Assembly: GCF_000006765.1 (NCBI RefSeq)
Contig: NC_002516.2
Source: Pseudomonas aeruginosa PAO1
Lineage (GTDB): Bacteria; Pseudomonadota; Gammaproteobacteria; Pseudomonadales; Pseudomonadaceae
Length of the DNA: 64,000 bases
Direction: 5' to 3' (one strand)
The number at the start of each line of letters is the position of its first letter. The first letter of the stretch is position 1. This document shows, one piece after another, positions 26,416 through 34,456 of the stretch. Below the pieces are notes generated by a model, which was not told where the DNA came from, did not search any database, and saw only the letters and a list, made by a program, of their open reading frames with translations. Both the position numbers and the translations under genes were made by a program.

Positions 26416-27045
26416 ATGTCCGCACGTCAACCCAAACGCGCCTTGCTGGTCATCGACGTACAGAACGAATACGTCAGCGGCAACCTGCGTATCGAATTTC
26501 CCGCCATCCAATCGTCGCTGGAACGCATCGGCGCCGCCATGGATGCCGCCCACGCGGCGGGCATCCCGATCGTCGTGGTGCAGCACCTGGCACCGGCGGA
26601 CTCGCCGTTGTTCGCGCGCGGCAGCCGGCAGGCCGAGCTGCACGAGGTGGTCGCCTCGCGGCCCTACCAGCACAAGGTGGAAAAGCAACTGGCCAGTTCC
26701 TTCGTCGGCACCGGGCTGGCCGACTGGCTGCGCGAGCGCGGTATCGACACCCTCGCCGTGGTCGGCTACATGACCCAGCACTGCGACGACTCGACCATCC
26801 GCCAGGCGATCCACGAAGGCTGGCAGGTGGAATACCTGCACGACGCCAGCGGCTCGGTGCCCTACCGCAACCGCGCCGGCCAGGCCAGCGCGGAAGAGAT
26901 CCACCGGATCTTCGGCATCGTCCTGCAGTCCTCCTTCGCCGCCGTGCTCAGCACCGAGGAGTGGCTGGAAAGCCTCGCCGGCCGGCACGTTCCGGAACGC
27001 GACAACATCTACGACTCCAACCAGCGAGCCCTGGCCAACCGCTGA
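26416..27045 (+). CDS. Isochorismatase-family cysteine hydrolase
   Basis: ALLVIDVQNEY and VGYMTQHCDDST; AGGAGG RBS. Confidence 0.9.
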   Translation: MSARQPKRALLVIDVQNEYVSGNLRIEFPAIQSSLERIGAAMDAAHAAGIPIVVVQHLAPADSPLFARGSRQAELHEVVASRPYQHKVEKQLASSFVGTGLADWLRERGIDTLAVVGYMTQHCDDSTIRQAIHEGWQVEYLHDASGSVPYRNRAGQASAEEIHRIFGIVLQSSFAAVLSTEEWLESLAGRHVPERDNIYDSNQRALANR

Positions 27046-27050
27046 AACGG

Positions 27051-27074
27051 CGCCGCCCCCCACGCGGGGCGGCG
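27051..27074. terminator. Hairpin between convergent genes
   Basis: CGCCGCCCC/GGGGCGGCG 9-bp stem. Confidence 0.55.
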
Positions 27075-27079
27075 AGCGC

Positions 27080-27652
27080 TCAGCCGACCAGCGAGCCGCG
27101 CGCCGGCAACGGCTTCCAGCCCGGGAACTCGCGCAGCCGCGGGTCGGGCACCGCGCAATAGGCGAATGTCCAGTTCGGCGCCGGCAGGTCCAGGCGCTCC
27201 AGCGGCACACGCGTGCCGGCGCCGGCCTGCGGCGCCTTCCAGTCCTGGGTGATGTGCGCACCGCCCTGGCTGGCCAGGAGGATGCCGCGGTTGGCGCTGG
27301 TGTCGTCCACCGTCCAGCGCGCGGCGGAGGCGTCCATCAGCACCTCCAGATGCTCGTCGGTCACCTTGGCGCCGAACGGCGACTGCAACAGCCAGCAGTA
27401 CAGGCGCAGGTGCATCGCCCAGTTCCAGGCGGCCTTCTGCTCGGCCGCCCATTGCAGGAAACCACGGAGGATGGTCAGGCCATCCGGCGGATCGATCTTC
27501 AGCAGTTCCGGGCAAAGGTCGTAGAGATGGTGCCAGGCGCTGCTCAGGCGCTTGTTGAGCTGGTCCGGACGCAGGGTGGAGTTCTTCGGCGGCAGGCCGG
27601 GAGCCACCACCAGGCCGGTCTGCGCCGGCAAGGGATATCTGTTGCTGTTCAT
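27080..27652 (-). CDS. MbnC-like (methanobactin biosynthesis cassette / AZL_007950-type) protein
   Basis: 190 aa with a GAGG RBS. Blocks WHHLYDLCPELL, FLQWAAE, WLLQSPF, MDASAARW and FPGWKPLP match, in order, Methylosinus MbnC as I recall it. No alignment was computed. Confidence 0.75.
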   Translation of the reverse strand: MNSNRYPLPAQTGLVVAPGLPPKNSTLRPDQLNKRLSSAWHHLYDLCPELLKIDPPDGLTILRGFLQWAAEQKAAWNWAMHLRLYCWLLQSPFGAKVTDEHLEVLMDASAARWTVDDTSANRGILLASQGGAHITQDWKAPQAGAGTRVPLERLDLPAPNWTFAYCAVPDPRLREFPGWKPLPARGSLVG

Positions 27653-27708
27653 GCTCTGAACCTCGCACGCAAAGGCGGGGCGCCGGGCGCCCCTGCTCGA
27701 CACGGCGC

Positions 27709-28185
27709 TCAGTGGCCGTGCTGCTCGTGCCCGCCCTGTTCGGCCGGCGCCTTGGACTCGACGACGATTTCCACCGGCACGTCGCCGGCCTTGCGGAAAT
27801 GCAGCGTCAGCGGGAAGCGCTCGCCGGCCACCAGTGGCTGCTTCAGGCCCATCAGCATCAGGTGGTAGCCGCCGGGAGCGAAGCGCAGGTCCTTGCCTGG
27901 TGCGACGTCGACGCTGTCGACTTTCTGCATGCTCATCATGCCGTTCTTGTGCACATGCTCGTGCACCTCGGCGGAAGCCGCGCGCGGCGTGTCGGCGCCA
28001 AGCAGGGTGTCGTTTTCCTTGCCGTGGTTCTGCACCACGAAGTAGGCCGCGCCGTTCGGCGAGGTCGGCGGCAGGGCCAGCGCCCAAGGATGCTCGATGT
28101 GCAGTTGGCCGGCGTTGTACTCGTGGGCCTGGGCGAAAGCGGAAACGGCCAGCAGGGCCGCGGCAGCGAAGAAGGATGTGCGCAT
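27709..28185 (-). CDS. Periplasmic copper chaperone PCu(A)C
   Basis: Signal peptide; HEH..GMMSM...PGGYHLML (H-x10-M-x21-H-x-M pattern); His-rich tail. Confidence 0.92.
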   Translation of the reverse strand: MRTSFFAAAALLAVSAFAQAHEYNAGQLHIEHPWALALPPTSPNGAAYFVVQNHGKENDTLLGADTPRAASAEVHEHVHKNGMMSMQKVDSVDVAPGKDLRFAPGGYHLMLMGLKQPLVAGERFPLTLHFRKAGDVPVEIVVESKAPAEQGGHEQHGH

Positions 28186-28314
28186 GGTGACTCTCCAGTA
28201 GCGTATGACCGGTCTTTTTCCGTCGGACCGGCGATTCCAGGGGGGAAGCTAGGGTATTGCGCCGCGACCTGCCCCGACCCGAAGGTCCAGGTTGTCGAAG
28301 GCGCGGGGGAGGAG

Positions 28315-28704
28315 TCAGGCGACAGGAGAAGCGCGCGGATTGGCGAGGCGCCAATAGCGCAGGGGAGGCAGGTCGGTGGCGGAGAAGGCGTTACGGGCAG
28401 GGCTGGCCAGCGGCGCCAGCGGCAATGCCGGCCAGGAGGCGACCAGTCCGGGCGTGCCGGCGGCGCCGGCGCAGCAGCAGAGGTGCGGGGCCAGGCTCTC
28501 GTGGTCGTCGGGAAGATCGATGTCCTTGAGCGCGGCACCCAGCTTCAGGCGCAGCAGCGAATCGGACGAGGTGCTGCAGAAGCCACCGAGCAGCAACGAG
28601 GCGCGCTCCTGCGTCGTCAGCGCCTGCGAAAGCGGCACCACGAACAGGTTCATCAGCACGGCCAGGCTGGCCAGCCAGGCCACGGGGCGCCGTGACAGGG
28701 GCAT
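28315..28704 (-). CDS. DUF2946-type leader protein (N-terminal TM, Cys cluster, C-terminal PRASP)
   Basis: GGAG RBS; RRPVAWLASLAVLMNLFVVPL TM segment; GFCST; HLCCC; ends ANPRASPVA. Confidence 0.72.
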   Translation of the reverse strand: MPLSRRPVAWLASLAVLMNLFVVPLSQALTTQERASLLLGGFCSTSSDSLLRLKLGAALKDIDLPDDHESLAPHLCCCAGAAGTPGLVASWPALPLAPLASPARNAFSATDLPPLRYWRLANPRASPVA

Positions 28705-28875
28705 CGTCGGTTCTCCGGAGAATGGGCCCTTTATGCCTGAGCGCGGGGCAAAAGTAAAAACGCCGGGCGCGACAGAGTGCCGCAGGTGAAAACGTTTGCA
28801 ACCCTTGCGGGCTTTCCCCCGCCGCGCTCTTCCGCCAGCATAGACGGCTTTGACGCCCGACGAGTCGAGAAGCCG

Positions 28876-31702: not shown

Positions 31703-33874
31703 TCAGAAGCTGAAGTCGACCTTGGTCCAGAAGGTCCGGCCCGGCTCTGGAACCGTTTCGTTGGCGGAGAAACCGAAGCCGGCGTCGCCGGCCTTGTTCA
31801 GGTGCTCGGTGTAATCCTTGTCGAACAGGTTATCGACACCGGCGCTCAGCTTGACGTTGCGAGTCACCCGGTAGGCGCCGTTGAGCGAGAAGACGCCGAA
31901 GCCGGCGCTCTTGTCGAAGTCCTTGCCGACCACGTTGCCCTGGTCCCTGGCGATGCGATTCTGCGGCGCGACCACCCGCCACAGGCTGCCGGCACTCCAG
32001 TCGCCTTCCTCGTAGGTCAGGCCGAAGCGCGCTTCCAGCGGCGGGATCTGCGGCAGCGCGCGGTCGTCCGAGCTGTTCTTGCCCCAGGCATAGGCCAGGC
32101 TGGCGTCGGTCTTCCAGTTGCCGGTGAGCTGGTAGGAAGCGCCCAGCTCGCCGCCCATGATCCGCGCGTCGACGTTGGTCGCCTGGGTCGAGGAACCCAT
32201 CATGCCCTCGCGATAGCTGAACAGGATGAAGTCCTGGACCACCCCGACGTAGCCGGAGGCCCAGGCCTGCAGCTTGTCGCCGTTGTACTGGAGGCCGAAG
32301 TCGAGCTGGGTGGTCTTTTCCGGCTTGATCTTGTCGAAGGCGTTGACCGACCCGTTCGGCCCGCGCTTGGGCGAGAACAGCTCCCAGTAGTCGGGGAAGC
32401 GCTCGGCATGGCCGAGGCCGGCGTAGAGGGTGGTCGGCGAGTCGGCGAGGTCGTGCTCGTAGCGCACGAAGCCGCTGGGCAGGGTATCGGCGCGGGTGTC
32501 GTTGGCCGTCGGGTTGGCCATGGCGTGGCCCATGTGCCCGGACTTCAGGGTCTGCCGGTAGTCCTTGACCGAGGCGCGGTCCAGGCGCAACCCGCCGATC
32601 AGCCGGTCGCGCTCGGCGGCGAACCAGGTCAGTTCGCCGAAGGCCCCGTAGTTGTGGAACACCGCGTCCTTGCTCCAGGGGAACTGGTCGGCGTCGGTGT
32701 AGTAGTCGGTCATCATGTCGTACTTGGAGCCGCGCGCGCGGTGCTCGTTGCGCATGGCGTCGACCCCGGTGACCAGCTTGAAGTCGTCCCAGCGCCAGGT
32801 GGCCGCCAGGCGACCGCCGAGGGTGCGTCGGTCCACCTGGGACGCCATCGGCATGGGCATCATGCTGGATGGGTCGGGAGTGCGCAGGCGGAAGTTGTCC
32901 ATGATGTGGTCGGCGTAGTTGTAGTAGACCTGTGCCTCGACCTTCTCCAGCACATCGCTGACGTTCGATTTGACGAAGCGCAGGCCCAGGCTCTCGCGCT
33001 TGAACTGCGAGCCGTCCATGCCGCGCCCGGCGTAGCGTGCCTCGCCGTCGCCCTTGCCGGCGGTGAGTTCGATCAGGGTGTCCTCGTCGGGGGTCCAGCC
33101 GACCGCGACGTCGCCGTTCCACTTCTTCCAGCGCGACGGCACGGTATTCCCGGCGCCGTCCTCGTAATCGTCGGACTGCGCGTGGTTGCCGGTGAAGCGC
33201 AGGTAGCCGAGCCGGTTGCCGGCGGCGGCGTCCAGCACCTTGTCGAAGCGGCCATTGGAGCCGGCCAGCAGGCTGGCGTTGACCCGCGAGCCGAGTTCGC
33301 CGAAGCGCTCCGGCTCACGCTCGAAGAGGATCGTCCCGGCCGACGCGCCCGGCCCCCAGAGCACCGTCTGCGGGCCCTTGATCACGGTGAGCTTGTCGTA
33401 GGTTTCCGGCGAGATGTAGGAGGTCGGCGCGTCCATCCGGTTCGGACAGGCACCGAGCATCATGCCGCCGTTGGTGAGGATGTTCAGGCGCGAACCGAAC
33501 ATCCCGCGCAGCACCGGGTCGCCGTTGCTGCCGCCGTTGCGGATCACCGCGAAGCCGGGAATGGTCTTCAGGTAGTCGGCCCCATCGCTGGCCGGCACCG
33601 GTTGGCGCGGCTCCTTGGGATTGGTGACGATGGTCAGCGGCGAACTCTGGGCGACTCCGGTGACCACGCTCGGCGCCAGCTCCACGGCGTGATCCTGGTG
33701 CTGTGAGTGTTCCTCGGCCAGGAGCGCCGACGGAGACAGGGCCAGGCCGCACAGTGCGGCGAAGGCTCCCGCCCAGCGGCGGCGTTGTGCGAGACGGGCA
33801 GGGTCGAAGCTGAAAGCGGCGGTCGGGCAGGCGTTGCCGGCCGCTCGTTGTTGAGTAGACATACGTTTTTCCAT
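31703..33874 (-). CDS. oprC: TonB-dependent copper receptor OprC
   Basis: TonB-receptor layout, GACPNRMDAP (CxxxM copper site), Met-rich loops, terminal DFSF. Confidence 0.95.
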   Translation of the reverse strand: MEKRMSTQQRAAGNACPTAAFSFDPARLAQRRRWAGAFAALCGLALSPSALLAEEHSQHQDHAVELAPSVVTGVAQSSPLTIVTNPKEPRQPVPASDGADYLKTIPGFAVIRNGGSNGDPVLRGMFGSRLNILTNGGMMLGACPNRMDAPTSYISPETYDKLTVIKGPQTVLWGPGASAGTILFEREPERFGELGSRVNASLLAGSNGRFDKVLDAAAGNRLGYLRFTGNHAQSDDYEDGAGNTVPSRWKKWNGDVAVGWTPDEDTLIELTAGKGDGEARYAGRGMDGSQFKRESLGLRFVKSNVSDVLEKVEAQVYYNYADHIMDNFRLRTPDPSSMMPMPMASQVDRRTLGGRLAATWRWDDFKLVTGVDAMRNEHRARGSKYDMMTDYYTDADQFPWSKDAVFHNYGAFGELTWFAAERDRLIGGLRLDRASVKDYRQTLKSGHMGHAMANPTANDTRADTLPSGFVRYEHDLADSPTTLYAGLGHAERFPDYWELFSPKRGPNGSVNAFDKIKPEKTTQLDFGLQYNGDKLQAWASGYVGVVQDFILFSYREGMMGSSTQATNVDARIMGGELGASYQLTGNWKTDASLAYAWGKNSSDDRALPQIPPLEARFGLTYEEGDWSAGSLWRVVAPQNRIARDQGNVVGKDFDKSAGFGVFSLNGAYRVTRNVKLSAGVDNLFDKDYTEHLNKAGDAGFGFSANETVPEPGRTFWTKVDFSF

Positions 33875-33994: not shown

Positions 33995-34456
33995 TCAGGC
34001 GATCAGGAACGGCGGCGCACGGGTACGGGCGCCGGGAAACACCGGCGAGGCGACGAACGCCTCGTTCAGGAAAGCGACGGCGGGCGCCGTCGCGAAGGGA
34101 ACGGAGAACAGCGCCAGGCAGGCGTCTTCGGTGAGCGGCGGGCTGTGGAACAACAGGCTGCAATAACCGCACTTCTCCCAGAGCACGTCGCTGGCCAGGC
34201 GATTGCCTTCCTCGCCGCCCATCCCCGGCATGCCGGCATGGACGACGGAGCGCTGGGCATCGGAACAGCCGGCATGGGCCATGTCGCCATGGTCCATGTT
34301 CTCGTGGGACATGCCTTCGTGGCCCATCCCCACGCCCATCGGCATCGGGTGGTCCATCGGCATCGACTGGGAGATCAGCGGCCCGACGAAGATCATCAGC
34401 ATGGCGAACAGAGCCAGCCATGCACCGATGCCTTGTCGTTTCAGAGTGGTCGCCAC
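33995..34456 (-). CDS. DUF2946-family (CruR-like) leader protein with CxxC and RAPP
   Basis: GTG start with GGAG RBS; N-terminal TM; Met/His-rich segment; KCGYC; ends GARTRAPPFLIA. Confidence 0.85.
   Translation of the reverse strand: MATTLKRQGIGAWLALFAMLMIFVGPLISQSMPMDHPMPMGVGMGHEGMSHENMDHGDMAHAGCSDAQRSVVHAGMPGMGGEEGNRLASDVLWEKCGYCSLLFHSPPLTEDACLALFSVPFATAPAVAFLNEAFVASPVFPGARTRAPPFLIA

Follow-up and report, generated by a model that had tools for sequence, protein, structure and literature searches.

The window that we analyzed, a stretch of 64,000 nucleotides from Pseudomonas aeruginosa PAO1, carries a gene for a PCu(A)C copper chaperone and, directly 5' of it on the same strand and 129 nt away, an open reading frame for a small protein of the CruR/DUF2946 family, which we refer to as the leader (Table 1). 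The neighborhood also contains an M23 peptidase gene on the opposite strand, a PepSY_TM gene, and a gene for a TonB-dependent receptor, followed by leuA. That receptor is OprC-like, and 120 nt upstream of it there is a second DUF2946 leader, this one with a RAPP-type tail. The locus is the PA3784-PA3792 region of P. aeruginosa. The PA numbers used here were deduced from the order and lengths of the genes and from published tables, in which PA3786 is a 390-bp gene adjoining PA3785 (PCu(A)C) and PA3790 is OprC. Proteins 98 to 100% identical to the leader include one that NCBI names as a DUF2946 protein of P. aeruginosa, and the genome nearest to the window in our comparison, G001, has 92% of the sampled words in common with it.

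Table 1. Features of the leader locus and of the RAPP-type leader in the same window.
Feature	Position	Strand	Basis
PCu(A)C copper chaperone gene (PA3785-like), presumed regulated gene	27709-28185	minus	Pfam PF04314, E 1.6e-40
Spacer between leader and PCu(A)C gene, 129 nt, 49 C / 35 G	28186-28314	minus	Sequence
GGAGAG, Shine-Dalgarno sequence of PCu(A)C gene	28191-28196	minus	Sequence; GGAG conserved in orthologues
Second hairpin, CCGGUC...GACCGG, conserved in sister species, no U run after it	28209-28231	minus	Fold and comparison
GACC-UUCG-GGUC hairpin	28276-28287	minus	Sequence and MFE fold
129-aa DUF2946/CruR-family leader ORF (PA3786-like); ATG at 28704, TGA at 28315-28317	28315-28704	minus	ORF list, Pfam PF11162
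Val and Ala codons, then TGA, 3' of RASP	28315-28323	minus	
PRASP codons	28324-28338	minus	
Conserved tail block W118-R-L-A-N-P-R-A-S-P127, putative arrest module	28324-28353	minus	Conservation
Cys76-Cys77-Cys78 cluster, putative metal sensor	28471-28479	minus	Aligned to CruR CxxC
Cys43 of GGFCS, invariant in subfamily	28576-28578	minus	Alignment A1
Hydrophobic N-terminal helix, residues 3-28; export signal or N-in/C-out membrane anchor	28621-28698	minus	AlphaFold and PMC4665194
GGAGAA, Shine-Dalgarno sequence of leader ORF, 6 nt 5' of ATG	28711-28716	minus	Sequence
OprC-like TonB receptor gene	31703-33874		
RAPP-type DUF2946 leader, CGYC, tail TRAPPFLIA	33995-34399	minus	Pfam E 1.4e-18

The first-pass annotation of this DNA, made from the letters and a list of reading frames, had described the ORF as a DUF2946-like leader, and this description was borne out. 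Pfam PF11162 (DUF2946) matches the leader over the entire profile (positions 1 to 117 of 117), with an E value of 3.7e-16 and a score of 60.4 bits against a cutoff of 23.7. The protein features that had been listed, namely a hydrophobic N terminus, an FCS motif, an HLCCC cluster, a C-terminal NPRASPVA, and a length of 129 residues, are likewise all there, and given the family match and the conservation described below they stand above chance. Residues 9 to 25 are hydrophobic, and in an AlphaFold model computed on the alignment the helix of residues 3 to 28 is the sole confident part; a published TMHMM analysis assigns PA3786 one N-terminal transmembrane helix with in-to-out orientation (PMC4665194). 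Past this helix the model contains no predicted fold (pLDDT, 48 to 61; pTM, 0.26), which fits a leader peptide better than it fits a stable protein. The three cysteines of HLCCC are encoded by TGC TGC TGC, and the tail reads N122-P-R-A-S-P127-V-A (residues 122 to 129). In four rare P. aeruginosa variants (P0004, P0006, P0009, and P0013), a frameshift or deletion in the middle of the protein does away with the CCC cluster; the RASP tail is in frame in the first three and is lost, out of frame, in P0013. Each of these variants is represented by a single contig and so may be an assembly error.

The most conspicuous feature of the leader is its C-terminal tail, which reads RASP where CruR has RAPP, and comparison with related proteins shows how widely this tail is distributed. 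A HMMER search of 1.84 billion representatives returned 23 matches to the leader, and nearly all of the full-length ones (30 to 46% identical) end in W-P-x-L-N-P-R-A-S-P plus two residues. Those with names belong to Pseudomonas putida, P. guariconensis, Pseudomonas sp., and Stutzerimonas stutzeri, and their annotation goes no further than DUF2946. In an alignment of 16 sequences with 24 to 40% identity to the leader query (A1), the only invariant columns are W10, L17, C43, and P123-R-A-S-P127, and mean pairwise identity is 0.90 in the ten-residue tail block versus 0.19 to 0.33 in the linker. Conservation is thus confined to the signal, the sensor, and the segment that would occupy the ribosome tunnel, which is the pattern expected of a leader peptide. 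A profile search of the Pseudomonadaceae gave matches in 156 of 301 genomes; NPRASP ends 31 of the 32 best ORFs, and the remaining one (L064) ends in NPRAPP in the same context. A DNA-level scan of 201 Pseudomonadaceae genomes for W-x3-N-P-R-A-[S/P]-P located 93 sites, which lie in 65 of the genomes and in 9 of 21 genera, with Ser at 85 sites and Pro at 8, and the reversed pattern, used as a control, matched once. When the Ser-only pattern (TCN) was applied to an even sample of the class (401 genomes), real matches were confined to Pseudomonadaceae genomes, three of them; the two matches outside the family (L071 and L072) proved to be chance matches once their frames were read.

Several further properties of the tail are shared across the subfamily. 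Exactly two residues follow RASP in 30 of 34 members, and the core is preceded by a conserved extended block, P-R-x-x-W-P-x-L-N-P. Synonymous variation occurs at all five PRASP codons, the Ser codon being always TCN, one transition away from CCN, and this variation indicates selection on the peptide, not on the RNA. Few species of the aeruginosa-group genus have the RASP type (5 of 34). The alignment of orthologues that had been proposed as a check on conservation came out in favor of the motif, PRASP being invariant in A1. The tail had also been called noncanonical; it does differ from RAPP, but it is the canonical tail of its own lineage. RASP is the near-invariant tail of a DUF2946 paralogue lineage in the Pseudomonadaceae and not a peculiarity of a single gene. 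In the literature that we searched, we found no description of this lineage, and CruR combined with RASP retrieved only a methods paragraph on SecM homologues.

The relationship between the two tail types can be read from the phylogeny. In a quick IQ-TREE analysis with SH-aLRT support, from which the variable motif position was masked, a split with 99% support separates all RASP sequences from the oprC-type RAPP leaders. The one RAPP-tailed sequence from the profile search, L064, is nested within the RASP side as the sister of L055, a RASP-tailed sequence, again with 99% support. In the motif the two differ by one base, CCT versus TCT, which makes NPRAPP of one and NPRASP of the other; they have similar spacers, and each is accompanied by a PCuAC gene. 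The pair thus represents a natural exchange of Ser and Pro.

The putative sensor also departs from that of CruR (Bp2923 of Bordetella pertussis; PMC9426467). In place of CxxC the leader has L75-C-C-C78. The distance from the cysteines to the tail of CruR is 45 residues, counted from CxxC to RAPP, and changing it by 5 residues in either direction strongly reduces the copper response. Between Cys78 and Arg124 of the leader there are also 45 residues, with a range of 44 to 47 in the subfamily, and because this spacing equals that of CruR we aligned Cys78 with the second Cys of CxxC, which places Leu75 at the position of the first. The tetrapeptide that closes with the last Cys reads CWCC in 20 sequences, CCCC in 4, xCCC in 6, and CPxC in 3, usually with a His nearby; LCCC is one natural form of this variable cluster. 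The comparison lends no support to the earlier suggestion that CCC may give a different metal threshold or specificity. Across the subfamily, the type of tail does not follow the type of sensor. One RASP-tailed sequence (L075:1066-1551) has a single Cys, in GAGC, together with a His-rich stretch and may be a metal sensor of a different kind joined to the same tail.

The genes that follow RASP-tailed leaders elsewhere link the subfamily to copper. In every locus examined, the leader lies directly 5', on the same strand, of a copper-related gene, whether for PCuAC, a TonB receptor, or CopC. Pseudomonas_E-like genomes have the order RASP leader, spacer of 46 to 72 nt, PCuAC gene, RAPP leader (CGYC ... 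TRAPP), and OprC or PepSY gene, with both tail types in series in one cluster (loci L043-L060; e.g., L043:490-1896); at one such locus the spacer is 24 nt long and the leader has a C-terminal extension. In Stutzerimonas-like genomes the RASP leader lies about 123 nt 5' of a TonB receptor gene, and one species of the aeruginosa-group genus has three RASP copies within about 2 kb, located by TonB receptor, CopC, and DUF6436 genes (L037:3987-6028). The third DUF2946 copy of G001 has the tail PANPRASPA, a CPMC motif, and a TonB receptor gene downstream, which fits PA0433/PA0434, PA0434 being CrtA. Copper is known to repress crtA specifically, so that here the gene behind a RASP-tailed leader appears to be one with established copper repression. 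The Bordetella counterpart of this leader is CruR itself, which stands ahead of CrtA and has the tail RAPP.

Published data on these genes add some context. In an RNA-seq experiment with N-acetylcysteine, a treatment that is not copper specific, PA3785, PA3784, oprC, PA0433, and PA0434 went up together and PA3786 was not in the table, a pattern that fits, indirectly, control acting after the leader. Deletion of PA3786 gave no growth, envelope, or Galleria infection phenotype, which is neutral with respect to the interpretation developed here. Fitness data for P. fluorescens show a DUF2946 gene in an operon to be cofit with a copper receptor and a chaperone.

Whether RASP could stall a ribosome can be judged against known arrest peptides. 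[quoted passage not shown] The leader has R124 and A125, both invariant in the subfamily, and an invariant P127 two codons before the stop, in a small exported-type protein of 129 residues with an N-terminal helix. It departs from the rule at the P site, where Ser126 takes the place of Pro or Gly, so that the core is R124-A-S-P127 and not RAPP. In ApcA and ApdA, arrest was lost whatever residue replaced the third-position Pro, and ApdP showed partial tolerance of Gly and of no other residue (PMC12992588); a change from Pro to Ser therefore kills arrest in the contexts of these three peptides. The one documented case of Ser at the P site is the SecM of Mannheimia (RGSP), in which the eight residues HAPIRGSP suffice for arrest, and RASP has been found among SecM homologues. 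The weaker cores RAGP and RAPG need specific upstream residues, and RAPP and RGPP tolerate many (PMC12992588). The first-pass annotation had suggested RASP as an additional arrest-motif variant, and this suggestion gains strong comparative support from the invariance of the motif, its synonymous codons, its exchange with RAPP, and the CruR-like spacing. RASP is probably a working variant of the RAPP stalling signal, and stalling at RASP is plausible but unproven. It is possible, although we stop short of calling it probable, that the peptides with PRASP make up a second class of copper-sensing arrest peptides in the CruR family, one of the Ser type that depends on the W-P-x-L-N-P context. Such a dependence would resemble that of SecM on its upstream residues, and the stall could be weaker than that at RAPP or easier to release. 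Clusters in which a RASP leader and PCuAC are followed by a RAPP leader and OprC would then give the chaperone and the importer separate set-points for one copper signal.

On balance, and with moderate confidence, we lean toward a model in which the leader ORF is a copper-responsive arrest leader of the CruR/DUF2946 family that controls the downstream PCu(A)C gene. In this model, the N-terminal helix would bring the nascent chain to the membrane, and the His/Cys cluster (H74 and C76-C78), about 45 residues before the tail, would sense copper on the ribosome-bound chain. The W-x3-N-P-R-A-S-P tail would halt translation once Ser126 occupies the P site and Pro127 the A site, with two codons left before the stop. 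If the leader works as CruR does, this halt would keep PCu(A)C expressed at low copper; copper, once bound, would free the ribosome and turn expression off, here most likely by premature transcription termination in the C-rich 129-nt spacer. The coupling to the downstream gene is the weakest step of the model, because a stalled ribosome covers the mRNA only to about the stop codon and because the orthologous spacers are short. The spacers of 46 to 51 nt in Pseudomonas_E-like genomes are short for a Rho site, and the coupling step may therefore differ there.

The RNA of the spacer itself gives limited guidance on this step. Its start, CTCCTCCCCCGCGCC, is as had been quoted earlier except that the T is followed by five C's where six had been written. 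The description of the spacer as rut-like has a mild excess of C behind it and nothing else: the first 40 nt contain C19/G9, a composition found at about 0.6 to 1.2% of the 40-nt positions of the window, and C outnumbers G in 27 of 33 RASP spacers and 41 of 44 RAPP spacers, counts that are not independent because the sequences are related. For the copper- and Rho-dependent control that characterizes the family, this C skew and the published RNA-seq pattern are indirect hints; the skew is compatible with Rho loading and is no demonstration of it. The GACC-TTCG-GGTC repeat that had been pointed out is present exactly at the position given for it, but it is not above chance and is not conserved in the sister species, in which two of its four pairs are broken and the loop is changed. 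Compared with that species, the 5' half of the spacer has diverged, and the 3' 56 nt, which include the second hairpin, are nearly identical. The predicted fold of the 166-nt region has a z score of -0.66, with 56 of 200 shuffled sequences folding at least as well. RNAalifold predicted no pairs in 14 short orthologous spacers, Rfam gave no match between positions 27500 and 29000 at E values up to 1, and a consensus scan of the spacer found no sigma-70-like promoter or convincing terminator. The short orthologous spacers differ in one further respect: GAATCG and CTGGAGA adjoin in them and are about 31 nt apart in the window (positions 28209 to 28237, minus strand). The stretch of about 31 nt that separates the two contains the CCGGUC...GACCGG hairpin and is absent from the short spacers.

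An alternative that concerns only the last step keeps the stall but has translation initiation, as in SecM or CutF, and not Rho, relay the signal to PCu(A)C. The stalled ribosome would then remodel the mRNA and free the ribosome-binding site of PCu(A)C, much as CutF melts a stem-loop over the cutO ribosome-binding site. In its favor, the orthologous spacers of 46 to 51 nt look too short for a Rho site, and the MFE fold of the region pairs the Ser-Pro codons (UCUCC) with the GGAGA of PCuAC. We rejected this pairing, which synonymous changes do not preserve: the Ser codon occurs with any of the four bases at its end (TCA, TCC, TCG, and TCT), whereas GGAG is fixed. The empty RNAalifold consensus and the unremarkable fold of the region likewise count against this alternative, and a ribosome halted on Ser126 would reach about the stop codon, some 115 nt from the ribosome-binding site of PCu(A)C. 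We consider signaling through initiation unlikely.

Less likely still is that the ORF encodes a stable small protein, exported or membrane anchored, that binds copper and works together with PCu(A)C, perhaps by passing Cu(I) on, its conserved tail serving for binding or sorting. In favor of such a protein, the Cys-rich cluster has a His before it and is encoded beside a chaperone gene, in a gene pair conserved across genera, and the cofitness of the P. fluorescens DUF2946 gene with a copper receptor and a chaperone agrees with it. However, past the first helix there is no predicted fold, and the linker is only 19 to 33% identical. The same tail stands before unrelated genes, for TonB receptors, CopC, and DUF6436, and it exchanges with RAPP, a proven stalling motif of the same family. 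Moreover, the fixed distance from the Cys cluster to the tail matches the geometry of ribosome tunnel and translocon discussed for CutF and CruR. The least probable reading is that RASP is a weakened, nonstalling descendant of RAPP in an ORF with little or no regulatory role or one acting merely by being translated: loss of arrest upon Pro-to-Ser change in ApcA, ApdA, and ApdP and the altered CxxC would suit it, yet a decayed motif should drift, and PRASP is invariant at 24 to 40% overall identity, in 9 of 21 genera and with free synonymous change, within a flanking W-P-x-L-N-P that is conserved too and that recalls the upstream-dependent cores RAGP and RAPG.

Seen as a copper-responsive arrest leader, the ORF most closely resembles CruR. 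Both are DUF2946 proteins that begin with an export signal and carry, near the stop, an R-A-x-P that follows a Cys sensor at a distance of 45 residues, and both are encoded by the first gene of a copper-related operon with a long spacer (162 nt for CruR and 129 nt for the leader). They differ in that CruR has RAPP plus three residues, CxxC, and a TonB transporter downstream, whereas the leader has RASP plus two residues, LCCC, and PCu(A)C. The W-P-x-L-N-P block ahead of the core also sets the leader apart from CruR, and its stalling and copper response are putative. The RAPP leader of oprC is a paralogue in the same genome that shares an aromatic residue and Pro at -6 and -5 before the Arg and a position 5' of a copper uptake gene; it differs in having CGYC, F-P-G-A-R-T-R-A-P-P, and four or five residues after the motif, and oprC-type RAPP leaders in general carry F-P-G-A-R-S/T before the core.

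More distant parallels are found in SecM and CutF. Like the leader, the SecM proteins of E. coli (RAGP) and Mannheimia succiniciproducens (HAPIRGSP) place a residue other than Pro at the P site of an R-small-x-P core, and they are exported peptides that stall near the C terminus, 5' of the regulated gene, as is putatively the case for the leader. Outside the core the sequences are unrelated, SecM monitors secretion and not a metal, and the Mannheimia core has Gly where RASP has Ala. CutF of Rhodobacter capsulatus (PMC9973294; bioRxiv 10.1101/2025.02.05.636593) likewise belongs to DUF2946, has a Sec signal, and ends in a stalling-like motif that lies about 45 residues past its Cys sensor; it controls the gene after it in a copper-dependent manner, as we propose for the leader. 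In contrast to the leader, CutF has CxxxC and a poly-proline tail, and it stalls in response to copper, the stall opening a stem-loop that covers the ribosome-binding site.

Roy et al. defined the family by CxxC and RAPP, and the large survey by Ozturk et al., of the CutF group, used PP in the last 15 residues as its criterion, so that RASP-tailed members were left out. In the W-x3-N-P-R-A-x-P context, RASP is nevertheless commoner than RAPP in the Pseudomonadaceae, including P. putida, Stutzerimonas stutzeri, and P. aeruginosa. If RASP does stall ribosomes, the set of rules for RAPP-like arrest cores would widen, and posttranscriptional copper control of genes for PCu(A)C, CrtA-like receptors, and CopC would find an explanation. 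Natural Ser/Pro pairs in otherwise identical contexts would then allow stall strength and copper release to be compared.

Two features that flank the leader and the PCu(A)C gene may be mentioned. The ORF that follows PCu(A)C (positions 27009 to 27668, minus strand) is PA3784-like, encodes 219 residues, and is conserved in the sister species; Pfam gave no match for it, and PA3784 is reportedly coinduced with PA3785. On the 5' side of the leader, TTTACT and CATAAA are separated by 17 nt (positions 28726 to 28758, minus strand), an arrangement that the consensus scan did not call a promoter. An RNA-library contig ends at position 28726, 4 bases beyond CATAAA, which is a weak hint of a transcription start.
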